Part shown: piece by piece, positions 22,587 through 45,887 of the stretch
Layout of the letters: the number at the start of each line of letters is the position of its first letter
Position numbering within the stretch: position 1 is the stretch's first letter
Assembly: GCA_020137815.1 (NCBI GenBank)
Contig: CM035361.1
Coordinates: forward strand, 5,580,001-5,644,000
Length of the DNA: 64,000 bases
Reading direction: 5' to 3'
DNA from: Hormiphora californensis
Lineage: Eukaryota > Animalia > Ctenophora
The notes under the pieces: generated by a model
What the model was told of the DNA's origin: nothing
What the model saw: only the letters and a program-made list of their open reading frames with translations
Database searches by the model: none
Position numbers and translations under genes: made by a program

Positions 22587-23173
22587 TATAATTATTATCC
22601 CTCCGGTTGATCAGTCATTGAACGCAATATAATCAATCAATTGATCATGCAGACTAGCTCCCCACTCTTCATCCATGAATTCTTCTTCTTCGTTGAGGCT
22701 GTCCCAACCCCGTCCATCCAATTATAATTTCCCTGTCCCCCTCATATTATAGTAGGTCCCCTGGTGATGTGTGCTTGCAGCAGCTCTCCTGTTATAGTGG
22801 CCCGCTGCTCCAGTCCTATCAATTTTCCAGATCACGTCTATAGCTACATTTTGGAAAATACTATACAATGTTTAAATGATATCATATCATCTGGTTTAAC
22901 TGATCAGAAAAACTTTAAACGTAACATCCTTTTTCAAGTCGCCCCACATTTTGCCCCTTGATTTTCTATCTTCCGAGCGGAAGCGGTACTGCAGTTTTAG
23001 AAAATTAGTAATATATCGGTAGTTATAACTTCTACGACCTGAGTTGTCATGCAAGATGCTGTCAATAATGTTCATGGCAGCAATGGGAAAATTACAAATC
23101 GGGTGGGAAGAGAAGAAAGCGGTAGAGAAGAGAGGAGAAAAGAGAGAGAGAGGAGGAGAGAGAGAGAGAGAGC

Positions 23174-23266
<93 letters not shown>

Positions 23267-23956
23267 CAGAGAGAGAGAGAGAGAGACGAGAGAGAGAGAG
23301 TAGAGAAGAGCGAATACGAGAAGCGAGGAGAGAGAGAGAGATATAAGAGAGGAGAGAGAGCTCGCTCTCCCTGCGGAGTAGCGAGAGAGAGTGCCATCCT
23401 CTCTCTCTCTATATATATTATCTATCTCTCGTATCTCTCTCGCTATGTCTATCTCGCTCTCGATATCGCTATATCGATCTATTCTTGATAGCTGATACGC
23501 CTAGATAGCACACTCATACACACTCACAACTAATCAGTCGTACCATTTAGAAGAGAGAGATAGAGAGATCTACGAAATAGAGAGATAGATAGATAGAACG
23601 AAATAGATAGAGAGATAGAGAGATAGAGAGATAGAACGAAATAGAGAGATAGAGAGATAGAGACAAAGAGAGATAGAGACTAGAGAGCGATAGATAGAGA
23701 GAGAGAAAACGAGGAAGAAGAGATAGAAATCATGAAGCACCAAACTGTGTTAGTTAGTTGGAGAGTGTAACTATAGCTGGGAGTGTAACTATAGCTGCTA
23801 TATATATGTACTATTTTATTTTCCTTGTTAACGATTTATTTAGAACGCATATATTGACTCAATATATTATTTAGACAAGTCTTGATATAATCACCCAACC
23901 AATTGAGCAGCGTTGTAAAATGTTGATGCAAAGCTCGCGTCGCAATGGAAATTTTG

Positions 23957-24065
23957 CAGGAACCGACCGAAACAAGTAAACAGCCAATCAGAAGTCGTTA
24001 TTTAGGTCACGTGACTGGTTATCAGTCAATCATGGACCAGTATTTCCTGATTCGGTCGGTTCCTG
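23957..24065. mobile_element. CAGGAACCGACCGA-family MITE
   Basis: Perfect 14-bp TIR; flanks aaattttg / atattttg. Confidence 0.9.
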
Positions 24066-24255: not shown

Positions 24256-24320
24256 ATGCACGCAGCACGATTGGCGAAGGAAATAGCACGGAGTAAAAAT
24301 GAAAAGGAAAAGAAGGAAAA
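24256..24320 (+). CDS. Alternative first coding exon A: MHAARLAKEIARSKNEKEKKE
   Basis: ATG, upstream tttcatag acceptor, gtaagt donor. Confidence 0.65.
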
Positions 24321-26598
24321 GTAAGTTGTTTATGTTATAGTTGTGTGTTTATGTTATAGTTGTGTGTTTATGTTATAGTTGTGTGTTTATGTTATAGTTT
24401 TGACTTGTGCGTTTATGTTATAGTTGTGTGTTTGTTGGTAAAATTAATCGTTTGATATACTTTCTGTGTAAATACACACACACACACACACATCGAACAA
24501 GCTCAGTTTAGCGAATCACCGGCGCAGCTGGGTATGGGGCTGAGGTACTGGCAAGATATAATGGGATCGCTGCTGCCCACACTTCATGTGCATTCTGATT
24601 ATCTCCCGCGCCAGTCTCCAACCCCCTTTACTAATGAATTCTAAAGTATTCTAACAGTCCGTCATACACATTTCCACCTGGAATTTCTTGCTTGTATTTT
24701 CTGTCAGAATCTGTTAGTGTCTGACGGTGTATAAGGTCCAAATGAGGCACGGAGCTTTTCTGAATCAGCTTTTCAAGACGAATCCAACGCAACCGGAATT
24801 AGCTTTCTATCTTATCGGGAAGGTTCGGTTCACTCACACTCATTTTTAGTCATTTTTGCCGCGCGAGCCAATCAGAGGCCAGAATTTCGAAATCCAGCCT
24901 TCTGATTGGCTCGCACAGCCAAAAATGAAAAAAATGAACCACACCTTCCCGATAAGATAGAAAGCTAATTCCGGTTGCGTTGGATTCGTCTTGAAAAGCT
25001 GATTCAGAATACCTCCGTGCCTCATTTGGACCTTATACACCGTCAGTCCCTAGAATCTGTATAACACGCACGTGAATTTGAGCCGCGGCGCGGCGCATCT
25101 GCACGTGCGGTTTTTCCAGAGAGAGTGAGAGACAATCGTATAACGTTTATGTGAGTCTCTCTCTTTAATATCGCACGTGAATATGAGCCGCGGCGCGGCG
25201 CATCTGCACGTGCGGTTCTTCCAGATAGAAATTCCAAATAGAAATGTGTATGACGCCGTGTAATGTTCTGATATTTACACAGCCGGCTGATCTTGGCTCG
25301 CTAGACCCTACGTTTCACCGGGTTTGAACAAACAAATTTGATTGTTGCCGGCCACCAATCTGATCGATGTACATTCCTTCATTATATAGGAGGGTCCCGA
25401 TATATAATCGTGAAGTTAAACTTTTCTCTCCCAAACAACCAGCGTATATAAATTGCAATCATCGAGTCTTAATGATGGGTACCCCCATCAGAATGTCGCT
25501 CGGCAATTTCCGCATTGGCTCGGTGATTGGTTCGGTAACAACAGGTGGTTTGCCGAACCAGTGGTTCGGAGAGTCAAGGAGGTCGCCGAAAACTTACCGC
25601 ACAAGGCCGCATGGCTCGGCAAACCACCTGTTGTTACCGAACCAATCACCGAGTCAATGCGGAAATTGCCGAGCGACATTTTGGGGCCCCCCATCAGAAT
25701 GTCGCTCGGCAATTTCCGCATTGGCTCGGTGATTGGTTCGGTAACAACAGGTGGTTTGCCGAGCCATGCGGCCTTGTGCGGTAAGTTTTCGGCGACCTCC
25801 TTGACTCTCCGAACCACTGGTTCGGCAAACCACCTGTTGTTACCGAACCAATCACCGAGCCAATGCGGAAATTGCCGAGCGACATTCTGATGAGGGTATC
25901 CCCCACGCCTGTCTCTCTCCATCGTGAAGCTGGATCGAGAGTTGCCATGTGGCTTCTGCATTATCAAGCCAACTCCAAATCAGGATATTGGACTTCATGC
26001 GGATGCGTACATGTCGACCGTTACAGTCCGTCGACAAATTATAAATTTAGGTGTATACAACGGATCATGGTACACTATAATTGAATTTGTTTATGCATAA
26101 ACAAATTCAATAATAGTGCACCATGATCCATTGTATACACCTGAATTTATAATTTGTTATTAAGTTTATGTTAAATTCATGTTAAATTCATATCGACATG
26201 GACAGATGCTTCCGGAATGAAGTTATATATATTAAATATATCCTGATTTGTATTTAGATAATGAAGCCGCTGCAAATGATCCAATCTCGCCCCACTGTAA
26301 CATACTCCATCCTTGATTAAACTTCATACTAGCTCGCTGCATGAGGAAGGGAGGGAGGGGAAGAGCGAGGAAGAAAGAGAGAGAGATAGAGAGTGCGAGA
26401 AAGAGTGAGAGAAAGAGACAGAGAGGGAGTCTCTAAATTTGAGAGATCGACGGCCTTTGAGAGCGATTTTATTGTAAAGTATATCTAGAATGTATATCAA
26501 AGAGATAGTCAAGGCTGCTATCGTGGCGCTATGCCGATAAGTATACGACTGGTTAGCAATGAGAGGGTTAAAGAGAGAGAGAGGGAGAGAGAGAGAGA

Positions 26599-26681
<83 letters not shown>

Positions 26682-29600
26682 ATAGAGAGAACATGGCAGC
26701 TGCAAAATCAGGACCAACAACCTAAATGAGCCCTGTATTTCTAGGACAAGATGAAGAGAATAGATCAGAGAGAAAGAGGGAGGGAGAGAGGGAGGGGAAT
26801 ATGAAGAGAATAGGTCGGAGAGGGAGGGAGGGGAAGATAGAGAGGGATGGAGAATTATGGAGAGAATAAGATAGAAAGTTGGATTCATCATGTGCAGTTG
26901 CAATTGTTCATTTACCCAGTCTCCCCCCTCGCAGAAAATAGAGACCTCCAGTTGTTCATGATCGGTATAATACGCAACCACGACTATCCTTTGTTCCAGC
27001 TTTTTGTTTCAATGTCTTCATATATACTCATGGGTACTATAATAAGCAGACATCTAATCTTAAAAATAGACAATCTTAATCTTGGATCCTAACTCAGTAC
27101 TTCATTTTAGTAATGAACTCTAAATTTCATGGAATTCGAAGTATGAAGCACATATACAATGTTATAGTAGTAGTAGCTTTATTATTACGATACAGCCAGT
27201 TTTAGTATATCTCTTCACGTCATTTGTTATGTTCTCTAATGGGGGAAAACAGTCCTGATCGAACCTGAGGTTCAGGCTCGAACCTGAGGTTCAGGCCACG
27301 GCTATTATATCTCAGGTTTCAGTGAGTATGGCTATTCTCCGAGATTTAAGAGAATAGCCATACTCACTGAAACCTGAGATATAGCCGTGGCCTGAACCTC
27401 AGGTTCGAGCAGGACTGAGATTTCATGTAAAGCTTTACATTCGTGCAGGGTGCGGTGAAAAAAGTTGAGCAAGGCAATGCGTATTATCCCTGCAAAAGTT
27501 GTTTTTGACACTGCTAATTATGAATCCATGTCTATTGAAGTTTCTTTGCATAAAACATATGATTATGGATATTTGGTCATTAGCGGCCCCTTACGACCGC
27601 AGATCGCTACACTTCGATTACATGATTTCTATCTGTCTATCTCTGCTATATAGCTCACCTTGCTTGCGATCCATCCTGCAGCCCCAATGCACGTGCCCAA
27701 TTTACTCATGTCCGCAATTCTGCGTTCTGATAGTGATTTAGGTTCAACATATTTCAACAGATCGCGTTCCGGTAACCATGATATACTGTAGCTATAACTT
27801 GGCTTAAATAAGCCGATCGATTGTCATACCCCAGAACCCTGCGTCGACCAATTTGTGCAATCAAGTACCCTGCACGACCGATTTGTTTGAATCCTATATT
27901 ATACTAGCGCACCCATTGGGTGCGCCTCAAGTAAGGGCTTTTTGATAACCCACCCGGCGGAGCCGGGTGGTTCTTTTCGCCCCTTTCACCGTCAAAAACA
28001 CGGTTGCCATGGCAACTGAATTGGTAACTATGGGGACTGGCATCTTAAAAGTCATTCGAAAATATTAACAAACTTCCTCTGGGAGTTCCAAAAGTGTGAG
28101 CAACAGCTTTACAGCTTTGGGCACATAAAGTGTTTTATGAAGGAGCACTGTCGCTTAGATACCGCTGAACGAACGACCACTTCGACGTTCATCTCCAAAT
28201 TATAATAGAGATTAGCACGCCATGCACGCAGCAAGAGCTGCCCGATCAGCTCGCATCAGATCTCGGAGAAATGCGATCCGGAAACCGACGGATCCCGCCC
28301 CACAACCCCCTCCTGAGAATATGTTACAAGCATTGCCATGTCATCGGGTCCTGAGAAGGAGCTGTGATATCAGTTGCATGGGGTAAGAAGTATTAGCCAA
28401 TCAGAGCTGTTTTGAAATCCAGGCAGCTGATTGGTTCTTGCGAATAATTAGGGGCCCTTGATTTAATTCTGCCAAATTTTCGAGTTTTGTCATATGATTT
28501 GCTTTTTATAGTAGAAAGCGCGTTGAATTAGAGCACCCGTTGACCCAAATCCCCACACTCTCCCTCACCCAGGAGCACCCCTCTCACCCGCTGCACCAAC
28601 CCGCACGTGCAACATCTTATACCCCTCCAAAGCCACCTCCTTGGCAACCCCTCTATTTGCACGTGTGGATACGACATACCCGACCCGAATCCCCACGCTC
28701 TCCCTCACCCAGGAGTGTAATGACTCTGTTATTGATTGATACGCTTGGTTTTGGGGTCAAGAGAATAGGGAATAAAGAACCAAATATAATATGATGAATA
28801 CGAACTGACTGACTAGCCACGTCAGTTGTGGACGTGAGCGTGGCTAGACATAACAATCGACTGCAACTAATAACAACCGACTAACCATTAACAATACGTC
28901 ATATATCCATATCATATCATTTCCCAAAAAAAATAATTATATAATAATTATAAAAATTAACACACTTTAAAAAATTTAACAAATGCTTATAGTCCATAGA
29001 ATAATACACACATAAAACTCTGTCTCATGCATCTTCAGGCATCTGGGGTTTCGCAGACTGCCCACTTCGACCGAGGCCACTAGAATTTTTTTTTTTTGTT
29101 AGAAACCATGATATTAACTAGAATCATAATATAAGTATTTAAATTACCAGAAAATGATTGCTACACATAAGCTCCGTTTATTCATATTAAATAAACATAG
29201 TAGGCTGCTTGTAGAATCTTTAATGATACACTGCGAAGTGTACAATTATGTGCAGGGGAGTGCTTCTAGATATTTCGGTGGCACCCTTCCAATAGTCGGA
29301 CTCTACACATCATGTGGATATTATCAGATCAACTGAGCTTCACTCGGCTGCAGCTGTTGATTTTGTTTTGTAACTGATTGTGGTGTCTGCTTTACTTTAC
29401 TAAAGTATTCAAGCATTCCAATGAACACCAAGTTAGCTAATGGTCCCATTCCGAAAAGGGCGCTAACGGCAATTAGTCAATTAAACGGTTAGTAAACTTT
29501 CTCATATAGAGATGGTTAGGATTAGAAAATTACGGAAAAAGTACTATTAGTATTAAACAATAAACATTTACAATTAAGGAGTCAGCCATTAAAAACAACT

Positions 29601-32600
29601 CGGAAGCATAATTCATATTATAAGATCAAATAGAAACTTCTTGAATTTTTAGTAAACTAGTATTTGTCCAGTATGTCTTCATTATTATTATTATATCTAT
29701 TATTATGTTTCAAGTGAGGTGTCACATTATATTAAGGTGATGTGTTAATGTGATGTGGCACAAAATCGTCCGATAATTGTGGTGTCAGGTGGGCTGTGTT
29801 AGTCAAAACAAAAACGTCAAAGTACGTTAGCGGGACGTAAGCCCACACCCTGAGAATAACGTTTCTGGTACCTCGTACCATACCATTAAACTTCATTATA
29901 AATGTTGTAAGTAACATGAGAAAACATAACTTAAAATCCATGTACAGAGGGTAACAAAAATTCTGAAAAAGATATCAGAAAAGACCCGTGAGAAAGAAAG
30001 TTACTGTTAAATATCTTTAAAAGATATGTGTAAAAGGTAGTTAAAACATACCGTGTTTGAGAAATAGAAGGTAGAAAGAGCTAATTTCTATTCGTCATAG
30101 ACAATCCAAAGCTCTCTATTAATGTGCAGTATCAGTACTGGTAGAGATCTCGCTTTCTGATTTGTTCCTTAACCTTTCTGATGTCCTTGTAGGCTCGCTT
30201 TCTGCCTTCTTCTCTTTTGCAGCAGCCTTGCTGCTTTTCTCTGTCTTCGAAAATCATTGTCAACATCAGGGGTGATCACATCTTCAATTTACCAGGGGTG
30301 ACGTCTTGAATACCAGGGGAAGAATCAGCAATATCATGGGTAGAATCAGGAGTGCATGTTTCCAAAACTTCAAAGTTGTGACAGTCGTATCCACTGTATA
30401 GAAACACCACCAGATACACTACCAAGATCATTGCAGCTTGTAGATCCTGTATGCTAGTAGGGGGTTTGCTTGAAGAACGGGTTAGAATAATAATGATAAT
30501 ATTTATTTTTTATCTAGAATACCAGAAGAATTATAAGTAATGGCGACAAGGGGGTTAGTAATGCTAATAACCAGAGTGGTATTTGTCCCTGGAACGTATA
30601 TTACGAGGTGATCTTCGGTAGCTATAACTAGAATCAGACCTGTTTCTATGATAAGAATTAGAAGGTATTTCAGAATCATGTTCAAACTTTACCTCTGTTC
30701 TGAGAATACTAGTATTTTGAGTTGAAGAATCAGTACCATTGAAAGAAGAGTTTTTACCATTACTGGATCCCATCATCTGGTCCACTCTCTCCAATCGTTT
30801 CGCCTGCTTGATAGCAGTAGAAAAAGTCTCTATATCGGGGAGCTCATTAAGTTTTCGTCTAAGAACAAGGTCTCTAATACCCTTTAGAAACACCATGAGT
30901 GAGATCTCCTCCCTATGAGTCCTACTATCAGGGTAGGCCAACTCTGCCTTTTGGCGTAATCTATAAACATAATCAGTAATTGATTCGCCCTGTTTTTGAA
31001 CACAATCTTGAAGGCTACTCCGAAAAGCAAATTGTTGATCACCATAAATATTATGTTTAATCTCAGCTAGAAAAGATTTATGATCAAGTTTGTCGTCGTC
31101 GTCAACTTGAATACTGTGTAATCGGTCATAAAATTGATCGTCTGCAATTGTTTGCATGAACAAGGCATACTGTCTTTCACCAGAAATATTATTAACTATT
31201 ACAAACTCAGCAAATCTATTACAATGAGTGATAAAACTGTCTCCCTTTTTGAATTTAGGAGGTTCGTTATAAAGAGAATTACTAGTACTCAAACCTCTTA
31301 ATGCTGCCACTAATTGGTCAGTGGAGCTGCCTGGCTGTTGACTAGAATTATAACTGCTAGGATCTTCTTTGACAATTTTACTAATATTTGTCTTAAACTG
31401 CTTGTCATTAGAACAACGTTTATTAAGATGAGCTATCAACTCTTCTTGAGAAAAATCATCAAGAGACATGATATGATTTAACAACTAATAATTAACAACT
31501 ATTAATTAACTATTTAAATAATTAAGAATTCGTATCAGGCTCCAAATGTAATGACTCTGTTATTGATTGATACGCTTGGTTTTGGGGTCAAGAGAATAGG
31601 GAATAAAGAACCAAATATAATATGATGAATACGAACTGACTGACTAGCCACGTCAGTTGTGGACGTGAGCGTGGCTAGACATAACAATCGACTGCAACTA
31701 ATAACAACCGACTAACCATTAACAATACGTCATATATCCATATCAGGAGCGCCACCTCTCACCCGCTGCACCAACCCGCACGTGCAGCCATCAATCACTC
31801 GCTGCGTAGGGGCTATGGCACCTCCTTGGCAACCCCCCTCTATTTGCACGTGTGGATACTACATCATCACGCCACGCATTTGCATCTTTTAATTAAGATA
31901 AATAATAAGCATGTTCGGTGCGGCCTCTACTACTTTAGGGCAGGTCATCCTCCAGACGAAGCAATCACAAACAAAAAACAAACAAACCTATCGTTTATTT
32001 AGTTATGGGCCGCGTGTCTTGTTTTGTTGGAGCTGAATTGCGTGGTTTACATTTTTCTTGAAGACATTTTCTTATTAAACCGTTAGAAAGGCAACACATG
32101 TCTCAAATGACACAAGGCCGAAGTCGAACGTTCTATGGACGTGTCACGTTATTACTATTAGTGTAGTGGGAAAGAACTTTCCTACAGCTGGCCTTGAGCA
32201 AGCGTACCTAAAAGCAAGCCCCTGTTTCGCGAGCCCCGCCCGTAAGGGTTAGAATTACATAACAACCTAAAAGTAGGAAAGTTCCTTCAATTTAGTCCTA
32301 CTAAGCACGCGTACTAACTTCTTGTTTTTCAGAGAACAGAAAAGGAGAGAGGAGAAACTGAGAAAACATCAAAAAGAACAGGTAACAGCCATCACACAAA
32401 CAAACAAGCCACCATTTCAATTAGATGATAGATTCGGTTTTCTTAAAAATCTTAGCACATCAAGTAAAAAATTCATTTAAATTCTGATTTTTCTAAATTC
32501 ATGCTAGGAAAAGCTTCAAAAGGAAATAGATTCTTTGGTAAGACAACACCCATGAAACCAGCTATCGCTTCAACTCCTAGCTATGCAAAGTGTCCCTTAG

Positions 32601-33810
32601 TTTTGAGCCTGAAACATACAGTGGTGCTTGTAGTGGAGATACGGCATATGGCAGATATGGCAGATACCGTAATGTCGCGGATTTTGCAAAGCTTTGCGTA
32701 ACGCGCGAGTGCTTTTGTGAGAGAGAACACTAAAGTTTTAGCTAGCCATCAAGGAGTATCCAGATAACTTTTTGTGAAAATCCCTGCTGTTCTCTCTCAC
32801 TTTAAAGCTTTTAAAAGTGCATTTGGTCAGCACCTCATAGCGCGTTGATTGGTCGCGCATGTGCGTCGTTTTACCGCGTATTTCACTGACACCGCGCGTG
32901 TCGAACCGATATACCGTATTCTCACTACTTAACCACCCATGATATACTCTATACTATTTCTACTCCAGCATCTCTCATGCTACCTCAGCTAACACTTGCA
33001 CTTTATCATAATTTATAGCATCTCTCATGCTACTCCAGCTAACACTTGCACTTTATCATAATTTTGATGCAGAATTCTCAAGTAAACTAATACCATTAAC
33101 GTTATTGACACAGTGGGCAGATATGATATACTGAGTGACTTTATCTCTCTTTTACTAATCTTTTTATCCTGCCAAAGCACGACTAACATATCAGTTATTA
33201 TAAACTAAAACTATCGAAAACACATGTGTTTTCAGGAGAGAAGGGGTATAACAACGGGGCTTCAAGATATCAGACGGGGAATGTCCCTAGATGTTAGCGA
33301 GCAGGATTCAATGAATGAAACATCTTTCGATAACGCTACAGGTAACACATATATTGTACAGTGTACACTGTATAAAATGTACATTGTACAGTGTACAAAG
33401 ACCACCTAGGTACTTTGTACACTGTACATTATACGTACAGCTCGTATTGTTTAACCCAAAATGTTATTAGATAATTTCCATAATTAATGATTCCAATGAT
33501 CTCATTCTGGGATTCGTCTCAGCTCGTCAAGGATACTATAATGGGTTTAAATCATGCCGTTTCACCAATTTTGTAGATACTAATGGGGTTAAATCACTAC
33601 TGTTCCAGTTTTTAAGATGTTTGCCAAATGCATTTACTTATCTGCTAGGTTATTACCTTAAATTGATTGGAGAGAGATTGGAGTGTTTATTTACCTTGTT
33701 AATGCTTTTAACTATTATATCATTTTACTAGGGAGCTTGTCAATTATTTCCTCCATACATCTCTCTACCGCCGCTCGGAAGTGTTTATCATTACAAAACA
33801 GGCCAAATTC

Positions 33811-33907
<97 letters not shown>

Positions 33908-36900
33908 CATATCTCGTTCAACTTTGCGTGATGGAATCATTAGTATTTAAACTTTTCAATTTATAATTTGCTCCAACTGCTTTGTTTGATTGGTAACTTG
34001 TCATTGTTTATTTCTTTGGCAAAGCTTGCAAAGAACCTTACTGAAGGGATTCTAAAGAATATATAAACGCCATTGCTAAAGAGGATTACTAATAAAGAGG
34101 AGCCTATCTTGAACCTGTGTAGCAATAGCCCCTTTTATAGGCCCACTCAAGCATAGTTCTGCAATATAAAGTGACAGGATGCAGGCAGCACGGATAGCCC
34201 GGCAATTGGCCCAAAACAAGCGACTCCTGCAACAAGAACAGAAAAAGAAAGACAAATTGGCAAAGTTTAAATCGGGTGGCCTGGCGGCAGTTGCAGCTAC
34301 AAGTAATCAGGAGCTACTTGATTTGCAAAAAATCGAGAAAAAGGATAAAACTGGAAAGAGAGGAAGTGTGGTGAGCAATGATCAGGAATCGAACGACAAG
34401 ACCAAGCGTAAGTTGAGAATAGAAATTCAAAAATGTATTAATATGTTTTTTAACTTTAAGAATTAAATCTGGTGGAATCATTTTAATGATTGTTAATAAA
34501 CGAGCTTTTAAATTAATTTGAAGTTTAAAATTTAATTGATCACTCTTTATAAAGAGTGATTTCAAATTAAATTTTTTCCCTGCCCGGGTGAATGCCGAAG
34601 GCATTCACCCGGATGCCTTTTTGCTTTGCAAAAAGGCATAGCAGGGTTAGAATTCGAAAACGACATTTTGGTATACTAACTAATCGGTAGAGGGACCATT
34701 TTGGTCACACTTTAGTTGCGAGGGGCAACGGTGTAGCAACAAGAGCCGCGCACACAGTTACGAGCTGCTCCTTCATAAACCACTTCATTGGCACGTTTTC
34801 AGGAAATGTGTGGCGCGCAATGTGGCGGCGTGGCGCGCAATTTAGTGCTACTAAAACACAAGGATTTGCTCTACACGGTGCACCAGAAGGATCGTCAACC
34901 CAAAGTTGAGCCCACAAAACAAACTTTTGTTGGGGGTGACCCAGGAGGCCTTCCTGAACATCCCCACGGTGAGAAAAGTATATGTTATCGGGGGAAATTT
35001 TTGTCAAAATCGAAAAAACTGGTTTTTGGTCCAAATTTGTGCATAACTTACTTGACTGCCGTTTGATGAAATATCTGATTGACATAAAATAAGTATACAA
35101 GACCTATTTTTGCACGAGGAATCGATTGCCGGTGGAGAGAAATCTCTAAAATGACCGGAAAATTGTCAAATATGGGAATTTTGTCATTTTTTTGAGGTTT
35201 TTGGCCCTTTAACCATTGAAAACGTTGAGATAGGAAGTTGGCAATAGCGCCAATCGTTAAAATGGTCATTTTTCTACGGGATCCCAAAATTTCATGTATA
35301 TCCGATTCATGGTTAGATTTTGGCAAACTATTGAGATGTGCTTACTGAAAAAAGGATAACTTGATTTTCTCGTTTTTTGCGATTTTTTAACTTTTGAAAG
35401 AATTCTGATTGAAATGGCCAATCAGGGCCATGCTAAAGTTGTTTAAGGGACAATTTTCGACCAAAATCCAAGATTTCATGCAAATCCAATGACAGATCAT
35501 TGATTTATAGAAAGTTGAAATAGGCAAAAAAGGCCAATTTTTACCATGAAAACAAAAATACACATTTTTTTCTTGTCAATTTCCATCAACAACTGGTACC
35601 CTACCTATTTTTGCACGTAGAATCGATTGCCGGTGGAGTGGATCCTCTTAAATGATTGGAAAAGCGGTCGAAATGTCATTTTTTGGAAGTTTTTGGACCT
35701 CCAAAAAATGGCATTTTGACCGCTTTTCCAATCATTTAAGAGGATCCACTCCACCGGCAATCGATTCTACGTGCAAAAATAGGTAGGGTACCAGTTGTTG
35801 ATGGAAATTGACAAGAAAAAAATGTGTATTTTTGTTTTCATGGTAAAAATTGGCCTTTTTTGCCTATTTCAACTTTCTATAAATCAATGATCTGTCATTG
35901 GATTTGCATGAAATCTTGGATTTTGGTCGAAAATTGTCCCTTAAACAACTTTAGCATGGCCCTGATTGGCCATTTCAATCAGAATTCTTTCAAAAGTTAA
36001 AAAATCGCAAAAAACGAGAAAATCAAGTTATCCTTTTTTCAGTAAGCACATCTCAATAGTTTGCCAAAATCTAACCATGAATCGGATATACATGAAATTT
36101 TGGGATCCCGTAGAAAAATGACCATTTTAACGATTGGCGCTATTGCCAACTTCCTATCTCAACGTTTTCAATGGTTAAAGGGCCAAAAACCTCAAAAAAA
36201 TGACAAAATTCCCATATTTGACAATTTTCCGGTCATTTTAGAGATTTCTCTCCACCGGCAATCGATTCCTCGTGCAAAAATAGGTCTTGTATACTTATTT
36301 TATGTCAATCAGATATTTCATCAAACGGCAGTCAAGTAAGTTATGCACAAATTTGGACCAAAAACCAGTTTTTTCGATTTTGACAAAAATTTCCCCCGAT
36401 AACATATACTTTTCTCACCGTGGGGATGTTCAGGAAGGCCTCCTGGGTCACCCCCAACAAAAGTTTGTTTTGTGGGCTCAACTTTGGGTTGACGATCCTT
36501 CTGGTGCACCGTGTCTATACTGTTTGTGTGATATATAAATGATCGGGATTTTGTGTCCCGCTTGCTGCTACAGCGGATCTGGTCATGATTTCCTTTCTTC
36601 ATAGATTCACATGGCAGGGAAATTCAGCAATATGTTAGAACATAATACAATTAATCTTGTTATATAAAGCTACTTTCCAATACTTTTCACACAATTCATT
36701 AATTGAACCATCCCGATTTCTCTCCATTGCAGAGCTGGGCCAGGGTGGAAAAACAGTCCGTAAGAAACACTTTTGATTTCTTCATTTTATCTTTTTTATC
36801 TGAAACACTCTTTCTGAGTTTTGGATTTGTTTGAAATCTTTCGTGTGATCTTCTTCTTCTGGTGTTTTACTTGCGTGTACTATCACTATTAGTAACCAGA

Positions 36901-38092
36901 ATAATATCACTATTAGTAACCAGGGTAACAAGTACATAGTAACCATGGTAACTATTAGTAACCATGGTAACTAATAGTTAGGGAATCTTTAAGCCTCACA
37001 TAACACATTATAAAACCGATCCTTTTCATTTATTCTAACAACATCTAAAATATGTGTTAAATTGAAATCTCGGGTATCCAAGCAAAAGTCATTTAAAATT
37101 TGATCGCCTTAAAGTTTACAAAATACAAAACTAATTAATAATTAACAAATTAATATTTAATTAATTTTCAGGAAAGCAAGGAACCTATCCTATACTTAAC
37201 AAAGGTAGAAACACATGTGCATCGTCCCATTATTGTAATCAGCTTGATGTGTAATATGTATAATCCTTGGCATATTATAGCACATTGCAGGAACCGACCG
37301 AATCAGGAAATACTGGTCCCTGATTGGCTGATAACCAGTCACATGACCTAAATAACGAGCTCTGATTGGTTGTTTACTTGTGTCGGTCGGTTCCCGCAAG
37401 CACGTTGTTATCATTTAATTTATTTTAGCATTCGCATCAGCAGAAAACTCATGAAAACTATACCAACATGTTTTTACATATACACTTCTTGACAGCATTT
37501 TATGTCTTATACGGTCAGACCCCGATTTAACGGGTCTGGCTGTACTACATCTTTAATATTTGGTTGTTAGGGTCACCACACACCAAAGTTAAAATTAAAA
37601 TTAAAATTTTAAAGTTAAAATTAAAATTAAAATTTTAATTTTAAACCCGCACACACCAGCGGCCGTTAAAATTTCTCTCCCCCATTCTAAAAGTAACAAT
37701 CTCGCGCACGATTTTAACGGCGTGTTAAAATTTTGTCATCCAACGCGACCGTCAAAATCGTGCGTGAGATTGTTACTTTTAGAATGGGGAGAGAAATTTT
37801 AACGGCCGCTGGTGTGTGCGGGTTTAAAATCAAAATTTTAATTTTAATTTTAACTTTGGTGTGTGGTGACCCTTATAGTGTGAGTTATCGAGTTTGCATG
37901 TGATATGGCTGACAAATTATTGGTTTTATCAATTTAATGAGCTGGTCAGAGCTTTATGGAGACATGATGTCTACAAATGGAGACATGATGTCTACAAATG
38001 GAGACATGTCTTTATGGAGACATGTCTTTATAGAGACATGTTTACAAATTAATCATCAAGAGGAATCCGGACGGAACACAACTGTGGACTAG
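24256..38092 (+). CDS. Small basic disordered protein (about 103-135 aa) with three alternative M[HQ]AAR first coding exons
   Basis: Exon A (24256-24320) or B (28222-28382), both phase 2, joins 32333-32381 (TACTAAC branch point) then 33236-33341 (phase 1). Exon C (34179-34407) is phase 1. Shared exons are 36733-36759, 37172-37204 and 38061-38092 (TAG); AATAAA at 38144. All introns GT-AG; all three isoforms are open. Confidence 0.65.
24325..24435. repeat. 19-bp minisatellite (gtttatgttatagttgtgt)
   Basis: About 5 units. Confidence 0.85.
24721..25046. mobile_element. MITE with about 110-bp TIRs and a central small hairpin
   Basis: ctgacggtgtataaggtccaaatgaggcacggag... / ...ctccgtgcctcatttggaccttatacaccgtcag. 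Confidence 0.85.
25482..25896. mobile_element. Inverted dimer of an about 205-bp CCC-ended MITE with a single outer TA pair
   Basis: Units 25482-25686 and 25687-25896 each have about 70-bp TIRs; their cores are in opposite orientation; ta|cccccatcag...ctgatgaggg|ta. Confidence 0.85.
26034..26157. repeat. 124-bp loop-less palindrome centred on atgcat
   Basis: acaaattataaatt.aggtgtatacaa.ggatcatgg...ccatgatccattgtatacacctgaatttataatttgt. Confidence 0.8.
27250..27417. mobile_element. Palindromic MITE with CAGTC ends; relatives at about 18128-18276, 16550-16680 and 8640-8720
   Basis: cagtcctgatcgaacctgaggttcagg...cctgaacctcaggttcgagcaggactg. Confidence 0.7.
27904..28211 (-). mobile_element. Non-autonomous Helitron (308 bp)
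   Basis: Minus strand a|TCtctattataa ... GC hairpin gcgcacccaatgggtgcg-CTAG|t; A/T insertion site, no TSD. Confidence 0.75.
28003..28016. promoter_or_regulatory. Perfect palindromic RFX X-box-like motif GTTGCCATGGCAAC inside the Helitron
   Basis: Exact match to the GTNRCC-AT-GGYAAC consensus; function untested. Confidence 0.35.
28222..28382 (+). CDS. Alternative first coding exon B: MHAARAARSARIRSRRNAIRKPTDPAPQPPPENMLQALPCHRVLRRSCDISCMG
   Basis: ATG, same MHAAR start, gtaag donor in phase 2. Confidence 0.6.
28716..31745 (-). mobile_element. Gag-only (pol-less) Gypsy-type LTR retroelement, 3030 bp
   Basis: Identical 199-bp TG..CA LTRs (28716-28914, 31547-31745); 4-bp TSD ggag; PBS-like TGGAGCCTGATACGAATTC after the 5' LTR; inserted in a 2-copy tandem repeat. 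Confidence 0.92.
30564..31484 (-). CDS. gag: Retrotransposon Gag (capsid-like)
   Basis: PPKFKKGD start, QKQGESITDYVYRLRQKAELAYP major-homology-like region, FLKGIRD; lies between LTRs. Confidence 0.85.
   Translation of the reverse strand: MLNHIMSLDDFSQEELIAHLNKRCSNDKQFKTNISKIVKEDPSSYNSSQQPGSSTDQLVAALRGLSTSNSLYNEPPKFKKGDSFITHCNRFAEFVIVNNISGERQYALFMQTIADDQFYDRLHSIQVDDDDKLDHKSFLAEIKHNIYGDQQFAFRSSLQDCVQKQGESITDYVYRLRQKAELAYPDSRTHREEISLMVFLKGIRDLVLRRKLNELPDIETFSTAIKQAKRLERVDQMMGSSNGKNSSFNGTDSSTQNTSILRTEVKFEHDSEIPSNSYHRNRSDSSYSYRRSPRNIRSRDKYHSGY
34179..34407 (+). CDS. Alternative first coding exon C: MQAARIARQLAQNKRLLQQEQKKKDKLAKFKSGG...KRGSVVSNDQESNDKTK
   Basis: ORF track 34179; upstream ttttatag acceptor; gtaagt donor in phase 1. 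Confidence 0.7.
34572..36630 (+). mobile_element. Helentron/HINE-like element hosting the giant palindrome
   Basis: T-run plus subterminal IR tttccctgcc (34575), with partners gcaggg (34641) and ggcagggaaa (36613); twin hairpins at the 5' end. Confidence 0.45.
34874..36513. mobile_element. 1640-bp near-perfect palindromic non-autonomous DNA transposon with Chapaev(CMC)-type ends
   Basis: CACGGTG...CACCGTG termini, 4-bp TSD tcta, arms about 817 bp, about 6-nt loop at 35691-35696; identical ORFs on both strands. Confidence 0.9.
37288..37396. mobile_element. CAGGAACCGACCGA-family MITE
   Basis: Matches the family consensus. Confidence 0.9.
37570..37872. mobile_element. PIF/Harbinger (Tourist-like) MITE, almost fully palindromic
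   Basis: tta|gggtcaccacacaccaaag...ctttggtgtgtggtgaccc|tta; 3-bp TTA TSD. Confidence 0.9.
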
Positions 38093-38359
38093 GATCATCA
38101 CCGTGTTGCCATGCCGGAGTCGCCCATTACTAATTAGGACTATAATAAATGCCTAATTAACGTATTAAATCATAAAACGTGGTTATTTATATAACTGTCG
38201 ACGCTGCTCACACTATTCGTTATATATTGTCCGTGAGAAAATTTAAAATTGATGAAGACGCGCTCTAATATATATTGTTGATATAGCTGTGTAGGACATT
38301 TGCACTTGTTAAAGGGTGGACATCTGCCGGTCTTCAAATTATAGCTAAGAGTTAGGCAG

Positions 38360-39023: not shown

Positions 39024-39461
39024 TTATTTAGCCGTAACAAAAGCTAAATTGACCGTTTAGTATTGTCTATGTCCAATAATTTATCAGCTGTCCTAGATTC
39101 AGTGCCCCCAACCTACATGCGTGCCCTCACCCTATATGCTTCTATGGAGGAGTACCTTCTTTCGTTGTAGCTGTAATGACAATTGACAGGTGACCACTGG
39201 CTATAGGTTAAGAAGTCACCCCTGTTATTTTATTGCATATATAGATGAGCCATCATAACGCGGAGCTGGGTAATTTCATTACCAATGACCAGTGGTCATT
39301 GACCACCGCCTAGGTTGGCATCTTGTTTACTGTATTATAGATCCTGACACCAAATGCAGTGGTTCAATCGGAGGCGAGCTGTGATATTATACTACTTAAC
39401 ACATCCCCTAATGCTTCCTTATATCTCACAGACCTGGTTTCTCTCTCTCTCTCTCTCTCTC

Positions 39462-39529
<68 letters not shown>

Positions 39530-40772
39530 GGCAACAATGGTGTCGTGACACTGATGCCACCGATCAACTTGTCGTACGATCCACTTAGAGAGAGGGGAGA
39601 GAGAGGAGAGAGATAAATCGAGAAAGGCTATAGGCTCCTTTTATAAAATGTCTATCTTATCATCTTTGTATTTCGGATTTTGGTATTTGCAATTCTTTGT
39701 TTTGTTTCCCTGCAAAATAGTCTCTGGGACCGCTTAGCTAACTAGTCTGAAAAACCAAAAAAAAAGTCTGAGAAATTAACTTCCCGTACAGAATTCCTTC
39801 TATTCAAAACAATATGATCCTGCCAATTAGTCCAACACATGTTGATGACTGATGTAATAAATTGTTAGTGCTGGTTTGTCATGGAATCATGCACTTGCTT
39901 ATACACACATGACTTCATTCATGAGCTAACAGAGATCAGTGAGATACATCGAGGTCCTGTCTGTGAGTAACTACTATATATTAGTAGTAGATATATATAT
40001 AGTAGATATAGGATCTCGTAAGAGTGTGCTAATTTGGGATGAGATAGTATCTTTTAGTGCAATATAATCGACTTCCATTACTCATACATTTCACTTATTT
40101 TACTTGACAGATATCATCCTATAGGCAGCTGTCACTGATCTGCGCAATGAAATATCACATACAATATATTGACAAAATAGTACGTGACATTTCGATATAA
40201 TGGACCATTATTAATGGCGATACCGTATCTATCTGCAGTAGATGAGATCATTACTTATATTGTTGATATAATATCAGCGGATTTCCGGTGCTTCTTCCAC
40301 CTGGATCTCGGCCAATAAACCAAAAATTGAATTCACCCCTGCAAAGACTGATATATGCTGATCAGAATCTTGTTTTGTCCATCTCTTAGATTTTGACCTC
40401 GTTATCATTGCAAGCTTTTACAGTTGTCACTTGCCCTGTATTTCAATGCACAGTTACAGTTACGATCGTATCTAGATACATACCCCAAGTTCATTAGTTC
40501 TCTCTCTTATTTAGTAGACTAAGTACGATGCCGATAATTAGAGTCCGAATCCCCAAAACTCGGCTCGTTGTGGAACAGCAGAAAAAAAGAAATTCCCAGA
40601 ATTGTACGAGGAAACTGGCTCTAACAGAGTACGCCAGTGAGATGATATGGAATGAATGTCTTCTGTTAAAAGGTATTTTTCATTAAAATGTTATCTCTCT
40701 CGTTGACTGTATGGCGGCGCCCATATCCCAATTTGATACTCAAAAGATGGGGTCGGCGGCGCCAGACAGCTC

Positions 40773-41168: not shown

Positions 41169-42318
41169 TTAATAGTATTGATTAATTTGTTTTAATTTGG
41201 ATTAAATATAAAATTTTCAAGAAGAAAAATTACCCCCATAATATTTCTAAAGAGCTATATTTAATTCCTAAACATTGAACAACACAATTCTGTGGCTAAT
41301 TAATGTAACCACGTACGGTCTCCTGGATGTACAAGTTATTATTATTATCATTATTATAATAGCAATGCAACAAATGTTTCGTTGATTTACCTTGACGATT
41401 TGATTAATATGATTGCTGCATCTATCATATATGTGTATCGAATATGAGTAATATAATATATAGAAGTAATATAATATATAGAAGTAATATAATATATAGA
41501 AGTTAGTATAATATATACAAGTTAGTCCTCTGATCTATATCTGAAAGTATAACGTGGTACGAGTTCTATAACATGTAAAGTGGTGCGTGGCTGATCGCCG
41601 TATTACCTCATTAAACCGTAATTGGGGAAGACCTATATAGTTATGTAATGTTATAGAGACCTATTAGTCATAAACAATTAGTATATCAGAGCCGAGATTA
41701 TCTTTGTAGTCTCTTTCTATCTTCCTATCTCTTTCTCTCTTTCTCTCTCTCTCTTTCTCTCTTTCTCTCTCTCTCTCTTTCTCTCTTTCTTTTCTACACT
41801 TCTCTCCCTCTCTTTCTCTTTCTCTTTTGGTTCAATATAAAAACTGCTGGTACACCTTTCTTTTGAATTTTTCATGTTTTGTTCCAAGCTTTTGTTTTTG
41901 CCGTATATTCTTCGTTTCACTCGACATTTATTATAGCTATCTCATTGCAGATAAAATAAGATTTGTTAGAGCAGTTTACTATTTGTTTTGCAGTTACGGT
42001 TAGCTTAAGATAACATGTAAGATAAAATTAGAGGTATCATGGTTGCTCCTTCTGTTCATATGAACATATGGTACATGTATCTCAAGCTAAGCTTCTCTAT
42101 ATGATATCTTTCATCATTTTCATCGTTATGGGATCAGAAGGTTCTATTTAAATAAAATCACCCCTTACTCATCAAGGTCATAAATGATCACTGATATGAT
42201 CTACATGTTGAAATAATGACTTAATTGGACAGCTGATATATATATAGTTGCAGTGTGGTGGTATGGTGAGGCCACTTTAACGACTAGCACGTGCTAGCTG
42301 GCTTGGAGTTTTCAAGAA

Positions 42319-42377
<59 letters not shown>

Positions 42378-44546
42378 CAGTATGAGAGAGCTCTCTTCTC
42401 GTGTCTCTCTGCTCGCTCTGCTCTCTCCTCTCTCTCCTCTGTCACTCTCTCTATCTCAGCTCTCGTCTTCTCTCTCTCTCTCCACTCTCTCTCTCCTCTC
42501 GCTCCCCCCTCGCCTCTCGCACGCTCTTCTAGCAATCCATACGCTTTTCTCAGTTCTCTTGTTAACTTTTCCCCCCGCGGTCTCTTACCATGATCTGCAT
42601 AATATAGTGACCAATTGTTTTAAATCTCTTGCTCTGCTTCTCCCTTCTTCTTTTCTCTCTGCTCTCTATGATCTCTGCTTCCTTGCTCTTGTCTTGCGCC
42701 GTCGTTGTTGTTTGCCCCTTGGTTGTTGGTCTACCCGCTTTCCTTCGCTGGTGGTCTCCCCTTGCTTAACCTTTGGGGGTCGTGCTTCTTATCCTACGTA
42801 TATCCACACTTTTTACCCATTTTTCCCATTATCGAACATTACTGAATTTTTTTCCCCTTTTTTTTGTTTGTTCCTTATAAGTCGCGTTTGTATATCAGAA
42901 CATGTCTCCTTTCCCAAATTTGTTCCCATTTAATTTTTTTAAAAACTTTGAAGTTCTGACGTCGCGGCGGTGTTTGTATCAATAATCTGAGTGCAATAAT
43001 TTTACTATAAGTGATCCAATTTTGTTTTTTGTAAGTACTTTTGTTGTTGCCTTGCTTGTCCCCCTTTTTGTTTTTTTCTTCCCCTTTTTCCACTTAAGAA
43101 AATCTTTAAAAAATTGTCTTTAAAATTCTGGTTTGTTCGCTTTGGTTTTGGTGGGGTTTTTTTCTTCCGGGTTTTTTTTCCCTCCTTTTTTTTTGTACTT
43201 TTTTGGTTTTTTCCCCCCGGGTTCTCCGGGGGGGCCCCCCCCCCCCGGGCCCCATCCCCCTTTTTCCTTATCCTCTCCCGTTTTCATGGCCGTTGATTCG
43301 CTCCCCCTTTGGCTCCGGCCTTTGGGGTTTTCTTCCCTAGTTTCCCCCCTTAGAAAATATATGTGCCAAAATTATTCACGCCACGGGGCTCTGAAAACTT
43401 TGTTTTTTTACCGCCATGCCTTTCCTTCATTAATTTTTGCTCCTCTCTTGCCCAAAGCGTTAGGCACGATCATAATTCAAAAAAGGACCCCCTTCTAAAA
43501 CCTCTCCCCCAAATCATTTTATTATTTTCACCGTCATTTCCCATTGCGTTGAGGGCCCTTTCCTAACCCGCCTTCCGTTTTTAAAATATGGTCGATTAGT
43601 TAAGTGTCTAGGACCCAGAGTCAGTACCCCGGGGGTTTTCTTTTTTTCAAGTTTTTTTTTGTTTTTTTGCTTGTGCCACGGTTTATCGGACATTTCCACA
43701 AAAAATTTTGGAATTTGCTACTGGTTTGTTTATTTTTAAACAATCAATATTTTGCTTTTGGTGTTTTGACATGGTTTCCAAAACAAGAAAATGTTCCACT
43801 TTTTTAGAAGAATATGAGTTTTGTTTGTTGTTGAATAACAAAGTTTTGTAGGTTAAAAAAGGGCAATGTCCAAAGCCTATCTATTTTTTAAGATTTTAAA
43901 CCACCAGGGCATGGGTTTTTATAGAAAATTTACTGCTCAATTTGTCTTTCGTCATTTCCCACTGATCCATGGAAACATCTCTCTACAGCTGAAGACATGT
44001 AGATACAATGCATAAACCAATTCGGCATCATGGGATGCCCCAAACACCTGTTTTAACTTTTATTAAAATTTATAAAATTTTAAAATAACACTGGAGATTT
44101 CTCGAATCAAAGTGCTTATCCAGCCTACCTACCAGAGCATAGTGATATCATTTGTACTGATTGTGCTACCACAGCTGTTATGTATAGGATCATATTTTCT
44201 GACTCTTGTGGAATCTCTTTAAATTTACATTTTTGGACCTGAACGTAGGTACTATTATTCACTTGCCAAACTACAGCTACACTTAGTGAAAGCATGGTCC
44301 TACTTTGTAATGTAACGGCATCGTATCAGTTACAACCAAACACACAAACTAGTGAGTAGCTCGATTTTTGGGATCTGTCTGGCGGCCCAGATCTGAGAAC
44401 CGAAACGGGGTGTCTGGCGTCATCAGGCAGCCTAGAATTGGGGTTGGGTTAAATTTTTGGAGTCACAATAATTAACTGAGAAATGTGTACATTTACCGGA
44501 CCGGGAGGATAATCTTCCCCCGAATTAGGAAATTAGCAGTATTTGA

Positions 44547-44717: not shown

Positions 44718-45887
44718 TGCAAATAAGTGTGCCAGCAACTTGGTGGAGATTAGAAAGTTTGTGAAGAGTCCTTGTACCCTCAACAAACTAGGATCTGCTG
44801 CCATCGACCATTCAAAAAGTGGGTGTTTGTGTAAAATTAAAAACCAGTATTTCAAGTTGTTTTCAGTCATTAGTTTATTTATACTGTTCGGTTTTGAACC
44901 ATCCCCTTGCAAGGTAACTTTAAGTAAAAAATATTTTCAGGTGTCAGGGCGTTATTACTGGAATCCACACAATACGAATCACAAGCAGGACAATTCGAGA
45001 AACAAGGAGAGATTGCTCTGACCCTGGCCTGTTTTACTAAAGCAGCTAGTCTCTGTAAAGAAGCACTTCAACTCCATGGTAACCATGGCAACCATGAACA
45101 ACTCCTTAGTAACCATGACAACCATGAAGCCGCGAGGAGACGAGAAGAGTACTTGAGGAGAGCCAGACAGATTTACAGGAAAATGTTGGTACTTTCGGTG
45201 GAGAATCCTGAAAAGCCGGTGACGAAAAAGGCCAGGAAAACCAAGCAGGTGAAATAGGGTTTTCCAAATCTTAAATACTGTATGTAGTTGGTTACATCAA
45301 CCAAATCTTAAAGTTGGTTAAATGGTTACTTAATTAATTATGTAGCTGTTATATAACTCTAATTGTTGTCACATTATTCTAGGTGTACAGTGACCATGGT
45401 AACCATGTCACATTATTCTAGGTGTATAGTGACCATGGTAACCATGTCACATTATTCTAGGTGTACAGTGAGAAACGGAAGTGTATGGACTGTGGAAAGA
45501 TGGTGTTTTGGTTAAAAAGGGGTCTCTGTTCAACGTGTGATCTGAACCTTCACAACACCATCATATCACCTGTTAGCCAGGTATTTAAAGCAAGCCATAA
45601 AACACTAGCCCTGAGTAGCCCGCTCAAATCGGATCACGTCACCAGAAGTTTAGTAACGTGCCCCGTATTAAATTGGGTTAATTGAGTGTTTTAGGCGGCA
45701 AACAAACTTGGGATCCACTTATTATTTTTCTATGCAGGTGCAAGATGAAGGTACTACAACGGAATCTCGATCTACTTCCCGGGGAACTTGTACCAGCTGT
45801 CGGAGAGGAGGAGGTGGAGGAACCCAGTCCTTGATAAAATCTACTAAAAAGAGTGTGTGTAGTGAAAGGAGAGGGGGCACAGGGTGA
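44718..45887 (+). CDS. 3' exons of a protein with a MIT-like helical domain and a CxxC..CxxC zinc finger (USP53/54-like architecture possible)
   Basis: Exons about 44718-44818, 44941-45248 (..AGQFEKQGEIALTLACFTKAASLCKEAL..RREEYLRRARQI..), 45461-45580 (CMDC..CSTC) and 45738 onward; GT-AG, phase-compatible; 5' exons lost in noisy sequence. Confidence 0.5.

Follow-up and report, generated by a model that had tools for sequence, protein, structure and literature searches.

Genes in which variable first coding exons stand in tandem and are spliced to constant exons include the clustered protocadherins and UGT1A, and alternative N-terminal exons also occur in FHF/FGF11-14, Kvbeta1, and KChIP. We analyzed a locus with a comparable layout in the ctenophore Hormiphora californensis. 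It lies in a 64,000-nucleotide stretch of chromosome 12 (GenBank assembly GCA_020137815.1, contig CM035361.1, positions 5,580,001 to 5,644,000 of the forward strand), which we call the window and number from its first base. A sequence-only reading of this DNA had proposed a gene with three alternative N-termini beginning M[HQ]AAR, largely missed by open reading frame (ORF) scanning. In our estimate, the chances are about even that this is a single-copy, ctenophore-restricted coding locus in which three tandem-duplicated 5' exons (A, B, and C) share their 3' exons. The gene itself is already known as an uncharacterized gene model of Pleurobrachia bachei, and its architecture is of a known kind.

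The locus resembles variable-first-exon genes in that its 5' exons are paralogous, each carries an ATG, and they lie in tandem on one strand, each with its own donor; the products would differ at the N terminus only. The phases of all three exons are compatible with one downstream set, because A and B end in phase 2, in which they could join a candidate exon s1, while s2 and C both end in phase 1, in which they could join a candidate exon m1, and all of these paths are open. The exons end at donors and do not look internal: each has a GTAAG donor, ranked in Table 1 among the splice sites between 22 and 47 kb of the window (1345 GT and 1575 AG sites, scored with a generic metazoan weight matrix), and stops lie upstream in B and C. 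Unlike the known genes, the locus has only three tiny variable exons (21–76 codons), two of which need extra small exons upstream of the third. It also differs in having no folded core behind the variable part, in that trans-splicing may replace promoter choice, and in being known here from sequence alone.

A Common Start in Three 5' Exons

The three exons open with MHAAR (A), MHAAR (B), and MQAAR (C), on the same strand and within 10 kb. DNA encoding M[HQ]AAR occurs three times in the window, where 0.02 occurrences are expected, and none of 100 shuffles reached three. A search of the 110.7-Mb genome (110,691,255 bases) for the longer pattern M[HQ]AARxA gave exactly three matches, always at this locus and on one strand, and the eight-residue pattern common to exons A and C is confined to those two sites. 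A regular-expression search of all six frames returned no extra degenerate copies of the motif that open an ORF. GTAAG has a density of 0.66 per kb, and the joint chance of finding one in all three ORFs is about 7e-4. A purine stands at −3 of all three ATGs. The ATGs of B and C begin their frames, because in-frame stops are located two codons upstream of the former and three codons upstream of the latter. The three ATG exons with M[HQ]AAR starts and GTAAG donors, read directly from the DNA, are therefore present as the sequence-only reading described them.

Local alignment with shuffled controls indicated that the similarity of A to C (p = 0.0003) and of A to B (p = 0.002) is greater than expected by chance; for B and C, just eight residues align (p = 0.06). 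The similarity between A and C reaches about 14–25 residues. At the DNA level, the three exons resemble one another only over ATGCA.GCAGCA.G, and no likeness is seen upstream. Within this start, Arg5 is encoded by CGA in A, AGA in B, and CGG in C, and Ala7 by GCG, GCC, and GCC, respectively. As these codons differ synonymously, the constraint appears to act on the peptide, and on this evidence we conclude that the starts of A, B, and C are ancient paralogs that have been kept at the amino acid level. The earlier proposal of selection on an N-terminal peptide gains support from the codon differences and from the first 21 residues of exon C, which are its most constrained part (see below). The accompanying claim, that a five-residue start is kept while the rest of each exon diverges, holds for the start itself, but the similarity of A to C runs well past it. 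The peptides of all three exons are basic (isoelectric points of 9.8–11.6), compared with 4.4 for s2. The GC content of exon B is 0.55, against 0.42 in its flanks, and for most of the exons described here it is higher than in the flanks.

Exon C and Its Homologs

A word-index protein search with exon C found two homologs. One is the uncharacterized P. bachei model EP00116_P017271 (sb/3477533; 107 amino acids), which is 79% identical over all 76 residues of exon C, and the other is an ENA ORF, P0002 (94 amino acids), which is 61% identical and carries an in-frame insertion of 14 residues relative to exon C. The alignment of the three sequences has 44 invariant columns, comprising 20 of the first 21 residues as against 24 of the remaining 55. 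The orthologs of exon C share the signature MQAAR[IV]ARQLAQNKRLLQQEQ, followed by KDKLAKFK and a K/E/S-rich tail. Past the exon C boundary P0002 reads ...GKLR, and the start of the intron in the window translates as RKLR, an agreement that fits a donor at the same position and in the same phase in the source of P0002. Conservation of M[HQ]AAR in relatives, which the sequence-only reading had named as a check, is seen for the start of exon C, and a homolog of exon B was not found. Judged by these alignments, exon C is real coding sequence and the conserved core of the gene. Inside it, at 34371, lies an alternative donor (GTG/GTGAGC, the sixth best of 1345) that would end the exon in phase 0; because both homologs are conserved past this position, full-length exon C is probably used at least some of the time.

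When an exon C profile was compared with 1.84 billion representative proteins using HMMER, only the P. bachei protein and P0002, both of which had gone into the profile, were recovered, and no longer protein was found. This result argues for an orphan gene restricted to ctenophores and against its being the 5' end of a larger protein known in that library, in agreement with the sequence-only reading. No Pfam domain was detected in exons A, B, C, or s2 at E ≤ 1. ESM Atlas gave no usable match to exon C, the profile matched PDB sequences only at the level of noise (E ≥ 0.6), and a scan of JGI metagenomes with it found no relative. Rfam returned nothing over the entire window, and a second genomic copy of exon C was not found.

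AlphaFold2, run on the three-sequence alignment, predicted a helix at residues 2–56, with block means of the predicted local distance difference test of 83–93 for residues 1–30 and of about 45–55 beyond them. The product had been described as a small, basic, disordered regulator; it is indeed small and basic, with a helix followed by predicted disorder and no known domain, and the regulatory part of the description stays conjectural.

Predicted Downstream Exons and the Two Ends of the Transcript

We enumerated the open exons behind each donor and checked the resulting isoforms by frame arithmetic only. Of the non-repeat internal exons that stay open behind the donors of A and B, only s1 is well flanked. 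It exits in phase 0, and from there s2 is the only internal candidate before exon C; s2 ends in exon C's phase. The two routes to phase 1 are similar in length (76 codons for exon C and 73 codons for A-s1-s2). The exons s1, s2, m1, and m2 are each single copy in the genome, and none of the repeats in their introns reaches them. There are no duplicate downstream exons in the window, so A and B would have no private exons to which they could be spliced. The candidate micro-exon m1 has a GC content of 0.59, compared with 0.31–0.36 in its flanks, and starts 68 nucleotides past the end of an intronic repeat. About 1.9 kb of the 2.3 kb intron between C and m1 is an inserted repeat containing a perfect 818-nucleotide palindrome; without that insertion, the m1 acceptor would stand a few hundred bases past exon C. 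Read-through of the m2 donor meets a stop after 17 more codons. We confirmed the exon lengths and phases first reported, together with the TAG and the AATAAA, which lies at 38144, and by frame arithmetic the three paths are open and encode 103, 135, and 106 amino acids. We also considered whether A or B together with s1 and s2 could be a full-length paralog of exon C; the best alignment, of RRGMSLDVSEQDSMNE with KRGSVVSDEQGSINE (p = 0.08), is a hint only, and we did not adopt the idea.

From the positions, phases, and ranks of these sites, we infer that splicing of A or B to m1 through s1 and s2, and of C to m1, is plausible, as is a single gene with three N-termini; the case for m2 is weak, and the last exon proposed earlier (38061-38092) is doubtful.

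Table 1. Exons, candidate exons, and intronic repeats, in window numbering. Donor ranks are out of 1345 GT sites and acceptor ranks out of 1575 AG sites.
Feature	Positions	Strand	Length (nt)	Acceptor	Donor	Description
Exon A	24256-24320	+	65		AAA/GTAAGT, 10th	5' coding, phase 2; MHAARLAKEIARSKNEKEKKE (begins MHAARLAKEIARSK)
Exon B	28222-28382	+	161		GGG/GTAAGA, 8th	5' coding, phase 2; MHAARAARSARIRSRRNAIRKP... (begins MHAARAARSARIRS)
Exon C	34179-34407	+	229		AGC/GTAAGT, 57th	5' coding, phase 1; MQAARIARQLAQNKRLLQQEQ... (begins MQAARIARQLAQNK)
s1	32333-32381	+	49	10th	CAG/GTAACA, 23rd	K/E/R-rich; enters phase 2 from A or B, exits phase 0
s2	33236-33341	+	106	114th	22nd	Contains RRGMS; exits phase 1, like exon C
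m1	36733-36759	+	27	3rd	TCC/GTAAGA, 273rd	Candidate micro-exon; LGQGGKTV
m2	37172-37204	+	33	55th	AAG/GTAGAA, 109th	Candidate micro-exon; KQGTYPILNK
Earlier terminal exon	38061-38092	+	32	798th, random-grade		...ESGRNTTVD, TAG
Alternative terminal exon	38034-38092	+		tctttatag/A, 293rd		Same phase; adds 9 residues before ESGRNTTVD and stop
Alternative downstream exon	39432-39548	+		cacag/ACC at 39432, 14th; second acceptor caag/TG at 39529		(CT)n, QVATMVS, TGA
LTR-type insertion	28716-31745	-				Intronic, between B and s1; two identical 199-nt direct repeats, 306-aa gag-like ORF (30564-31484)
Perfect palindrome	34873-36514					Intronic, between C and m1; two 818-nt arms, 100% complementary, 6-nt spacer; inside dispersed repeat

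Weakness of the last exon's acceptor had been noted from the start, and its rank bears this out. Each candidate 3' end is followed by an AATAAA, at 38144 and 39856. Past exon C, the P. bachei model reads RLVSLFLSLSLYLSLSLSLSLSQLATMVS and then stops (RLVSL..LSLSQLATMVS), and positions 39432-39548 of the window read cacag/ACCTGGTTTCTCTC...(CT)n...CAAGTGGCAACAATGGTGTCGTGA. Translation in phase 1 from 39432 gives HLVSL(SL)n, and the frame that is entered in phase 1 at 39529 ends LSLSQVATMVS and stop; splicing of m2 or of C to the acceptor at 39529 in phase 1 would yield [V/L]ATMVS and stop, an ending like that of P. bachei. Neither the flank of this segment nor its degenerate pattern occurs elsewhere in the 110-Mb genome, which identifies 39432-39548 as the element orthologous to the P. 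bachei tail, and the junction in the P. bachei model coincides exactly with the 14th-ranked acceptor at 39432. Of the 3' ends considered, the exon at 38061 is the least supported by these comparisons, and the exon at 39432/39529 appears at least as likely. An ORF on the + strand at 44928-45254 was considered as a 3' domain and dropped, because it has no Pfam match and its PDB match is borderline and implausible; no Pfam domain was found in any + strand ORF between 38 and 47 kb.

As to the 5' end, at least 56% of H. californensis Iso-Seq reads carry a spliced leader, and more than half of the annotated transcripts start at an AG (PMC8527503). Exon A has usable acceptors 12–17 nucleotides upstream of its ATG, and exon C has a good acceptor 38 nucleotides upstream, with no ATG between; for exon B, no good acceptor was found within 200 nucleotides upstream. 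The "alternative first exons" may accordingly mark alternative sites of trans-splicing or belong to distinct transcription units, and not be a matter of classical promoter choice. The last 22 nucleotides of the published H. californensis spliced leader (PMC8527503) match the window exactly at 10513-10534 (− strand), which is probably one of the ~718 reported leader loci.

Several repeats interrupt or surround the locus. The identical 199-nucleotide repeats of the long terminal repeat (LTR)-type element between B and s1 suggest a recent insertion; its gag-like ORF has no Pfam match. The palindrome between C and m1 may represent a foldback element or an artifact of assembly; it sits in a dispersed repeat, the end of which (36610-36665) is present genome-wide in more than 40 copies. 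Inverted copies of a 112-nucleotide element, 93% complementary and resembling a miniature inverted-repeat transposable element, lie just upstream of A (23954-24065) and downstream of m2 (37288-37399). Long (GA)n/(CT)n microsatellites are found at 23044-23690, 26332-26700, 33813-33915, 39440-39525, and 41657-42400; one of them lies 270 nucleotides upstream of the exon C ATG, and the flanks of another are conserved with P. bachei. Downstream, the locus is bounded by an opposite-strand gene (47405-50360, − strand) that encodes low-density lipoprotein (LDL)-receptor class A repeats followed by a rhodopsin-type seven-transmembrane domain, as in an LDLa-containing G-protein-coupled receptor. A non-LTR retrotransposon with endonuclease and RVT_1 reverse transcriptase domains (54593-56459, + strand) explains the strong GC/AT skew at 52–58 kb.

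Alternative Explanations and Possible Function

In the model that we favor, the start of the gene would have been duplicated in tandem long ago to give exons A, B, and C, and selection on the amino acid sequence would have kept the opening M-[HQ]-A-A-R-x-A-[KR] in all three. Exon C would run straight to its phase 1 donor, A and B would reach phase 1 through s1 and s2, and both arms would then use common 3' exons starting at m1. The 5' end would be picked either through the use of different promoters or through spliced-leader trans-splicing at alternative sites, and this choice would swap the N-terminal helix and leave the tail constant. The predicted product is basic and about 100 residues long, with a strongly conserved helix over about 30 N-terminal residues and, behind it, a disordered, K/E/S-rich tail. 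The invariant helix could be a docking surface for a partner, and RRGMS in s2 and KRGS in C, which lie behind the helix, could be a basophilic-kinase-like phosphorylation site through which the protein is regulated.

A number of our results weigh against this model. The word-index search with exon B and with the open frame of s2 produced no homolog candidates, BLASTP detected nothing when s1 and s2 were compared with exon C, and local alignments of these sequences were not significant. The micro-exons are too short for a statistical or homology test, the openness of m2 is uninformative, and the m1 donor ranks just 273rd. The P. bachei model lacks m1 and m2 and passes straight from exon C into the (CT)n exon, and the terminal exon at 38061, with its acceptor of rank 798, has no conservation evidence. 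The amphipathicity of the N-terminal helix was not above that of shuffled sequences. Finally, A and C have usable acceptors just ahead of their ATGs, and trans-splicing is common in the species; in one shared primary transcript, the A donor could be joined to acceptors of this kind with a nonsense product. Hand translation of the A donor spliced to the AGs just upstream of the exon B ATG met premature stops, and this favors transcription units that start separately.

Appreciably less probable than the favored model, though a serious competitor, is the explanation that only exon C and the downstream exons are functional, and that A, B, s1, and s2 form a separate upstream paralog or are decaying relics, with no splicing across C. 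Conservation was demonstrated for exon C alone, B and s2 lack a detected homolog, and the P. bachei model begins at C. Exon C has its own acceptor 38 nucleotides upstream, together with TATA-like elements, and with trans-splicing as the rule it could be an independent unit nested after s2. Read-through of the s2 donor would end the ORF 22 codons later. However, relics would not be expected to keep their ATGs and reading frames intact in each of the three exons, together with donors of top rank (the chance of about 7e-4 given above), nor to preserve the peptide while the Arg5 and Ala7 codons changed synonymously. Moreover, s2 ends exactly in exon C's phase, and an upstream gene would have no private 3' exons and no AATAAA or ATTAAA that we could see between s2 and C. 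We regard it as rather unlikely that these exons form the beginning of a longer transcript extending past 38.1 kb, to 39432/39529 or beyond, so that the micro-exons or the last exon are wrong. This would account for the P. bachei tail, which is orthologous to 39432-39548 and joined at the 14th-ranked acceptor, for the ...ATMVS ending obtained from 39529 in phase 1, which is the same as that of P. bachei, and for the random-grade acceptor at 38061. On the other hand, a long (CT)n in a coding exon would be frame-unstable, and the two species do read through the repeat in different frames; the P. bachei model itself may come from ab initio prediction. The absence of Pfam domains from the + strand ORFs at 38–47 kb, the opposite-strand receptor gene from 47.4 kb, and the HMMER scan, in which no longer protein carried exon C, also count against a longer transcript.

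The most skeptical explanation, that there is no gene and that we are looking at a chance product of hand-picked, open segments bounded by AG and GT in AT-rich noncoding DNA, is in our judgment highly improbable. For micro-exons as short as 27 and 33 nucleotides, an open frame is more likely than not by chance alone, and there are thousands of AG and GT sites from which to pick. Chance does not, however, explain the protein-level conservation of exon C in two other species, with in-frame insertions or deletions, the confinement of the motif to this locus in 110 Mb, or the donors of A and B, which are in the top 1%. It is refuted for exon C and the three starts, and could apply only to m2 and the last exon.

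The closest described protein is P. bachei EP00116_P017271, which has the same start, an exon C ortholog, and a tail that corresponds to window positions 39432-39548. It differs in having a single N terminus, no m1 or m2, and an LS repeat encoded by (CT)n; it carries no annotation and, as a model, is probably imperfect. The sequence-only reading had drawn an analogy to channel-blocking N-terminal peptides, and like those of Kvbeta1.3 and the A-type FHFs, the peptides described here are short, basic, and encoded by an alternative first exon. The Kvbeta and FHF inactivation peptides sit on a folded core, which is aldo-keto-reductase-like in the one case and an FGF beta-trefoil in the other. The ctenophore product has neither a folded core, according to Pfam and AlphaFold2, nor any sequence relationship to these proteins, and only residues 1–30 of its ~100 amino acids are confidently helical; we find no support for the analogy.

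The protein also resembles PKI (PF02827) in being small and disordered, and exon B contains RIRSRRNAIRK, in which RRNAI is preceded by upstream arginines, as in the PKI pseudosubstrate; RRGMS in s2 and KRGS in C are at a comparable place. Membership in this family is not supported: Pfam at E ≤ 1 gave no PKI match, and RRNAI is a post hoc match of five residues in an exon without detected conservation. As a long shot, the locus might encode a ctenophore docking or inhibitory helix of about 21 N-terminal residues in three versions, in which the pseudosubstrate-like RRNAI of B, as opposed to the phosphorylatable RRGMS or KRGS, would provide an inhibitor/substrate isoform switch for a basophilic kinase. 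SERF/4F5, TMA7, CaMKIIN, complexin, and a mitochondrial presequence were considered and dropped for want of a profile match; a mitochondrial presequence is in any case unlikely for exon C, given that 20 of its first 21 residues are invariant.

At present this is an uncharacterized, lineage-restricted gene and not a surprise for the field. The locus illustrates how orphan genes built of small exons and micro-exons escape ORF-based scanning, and the conservation of its 21-residue N-terminal peptide is strong enough for a specific binding element. If the model with three starts is true, the locus would be a compact case of N-terminal diversification by exon duplication in an early-branching animal lineage, in a family without relatives outside the ctenophores.

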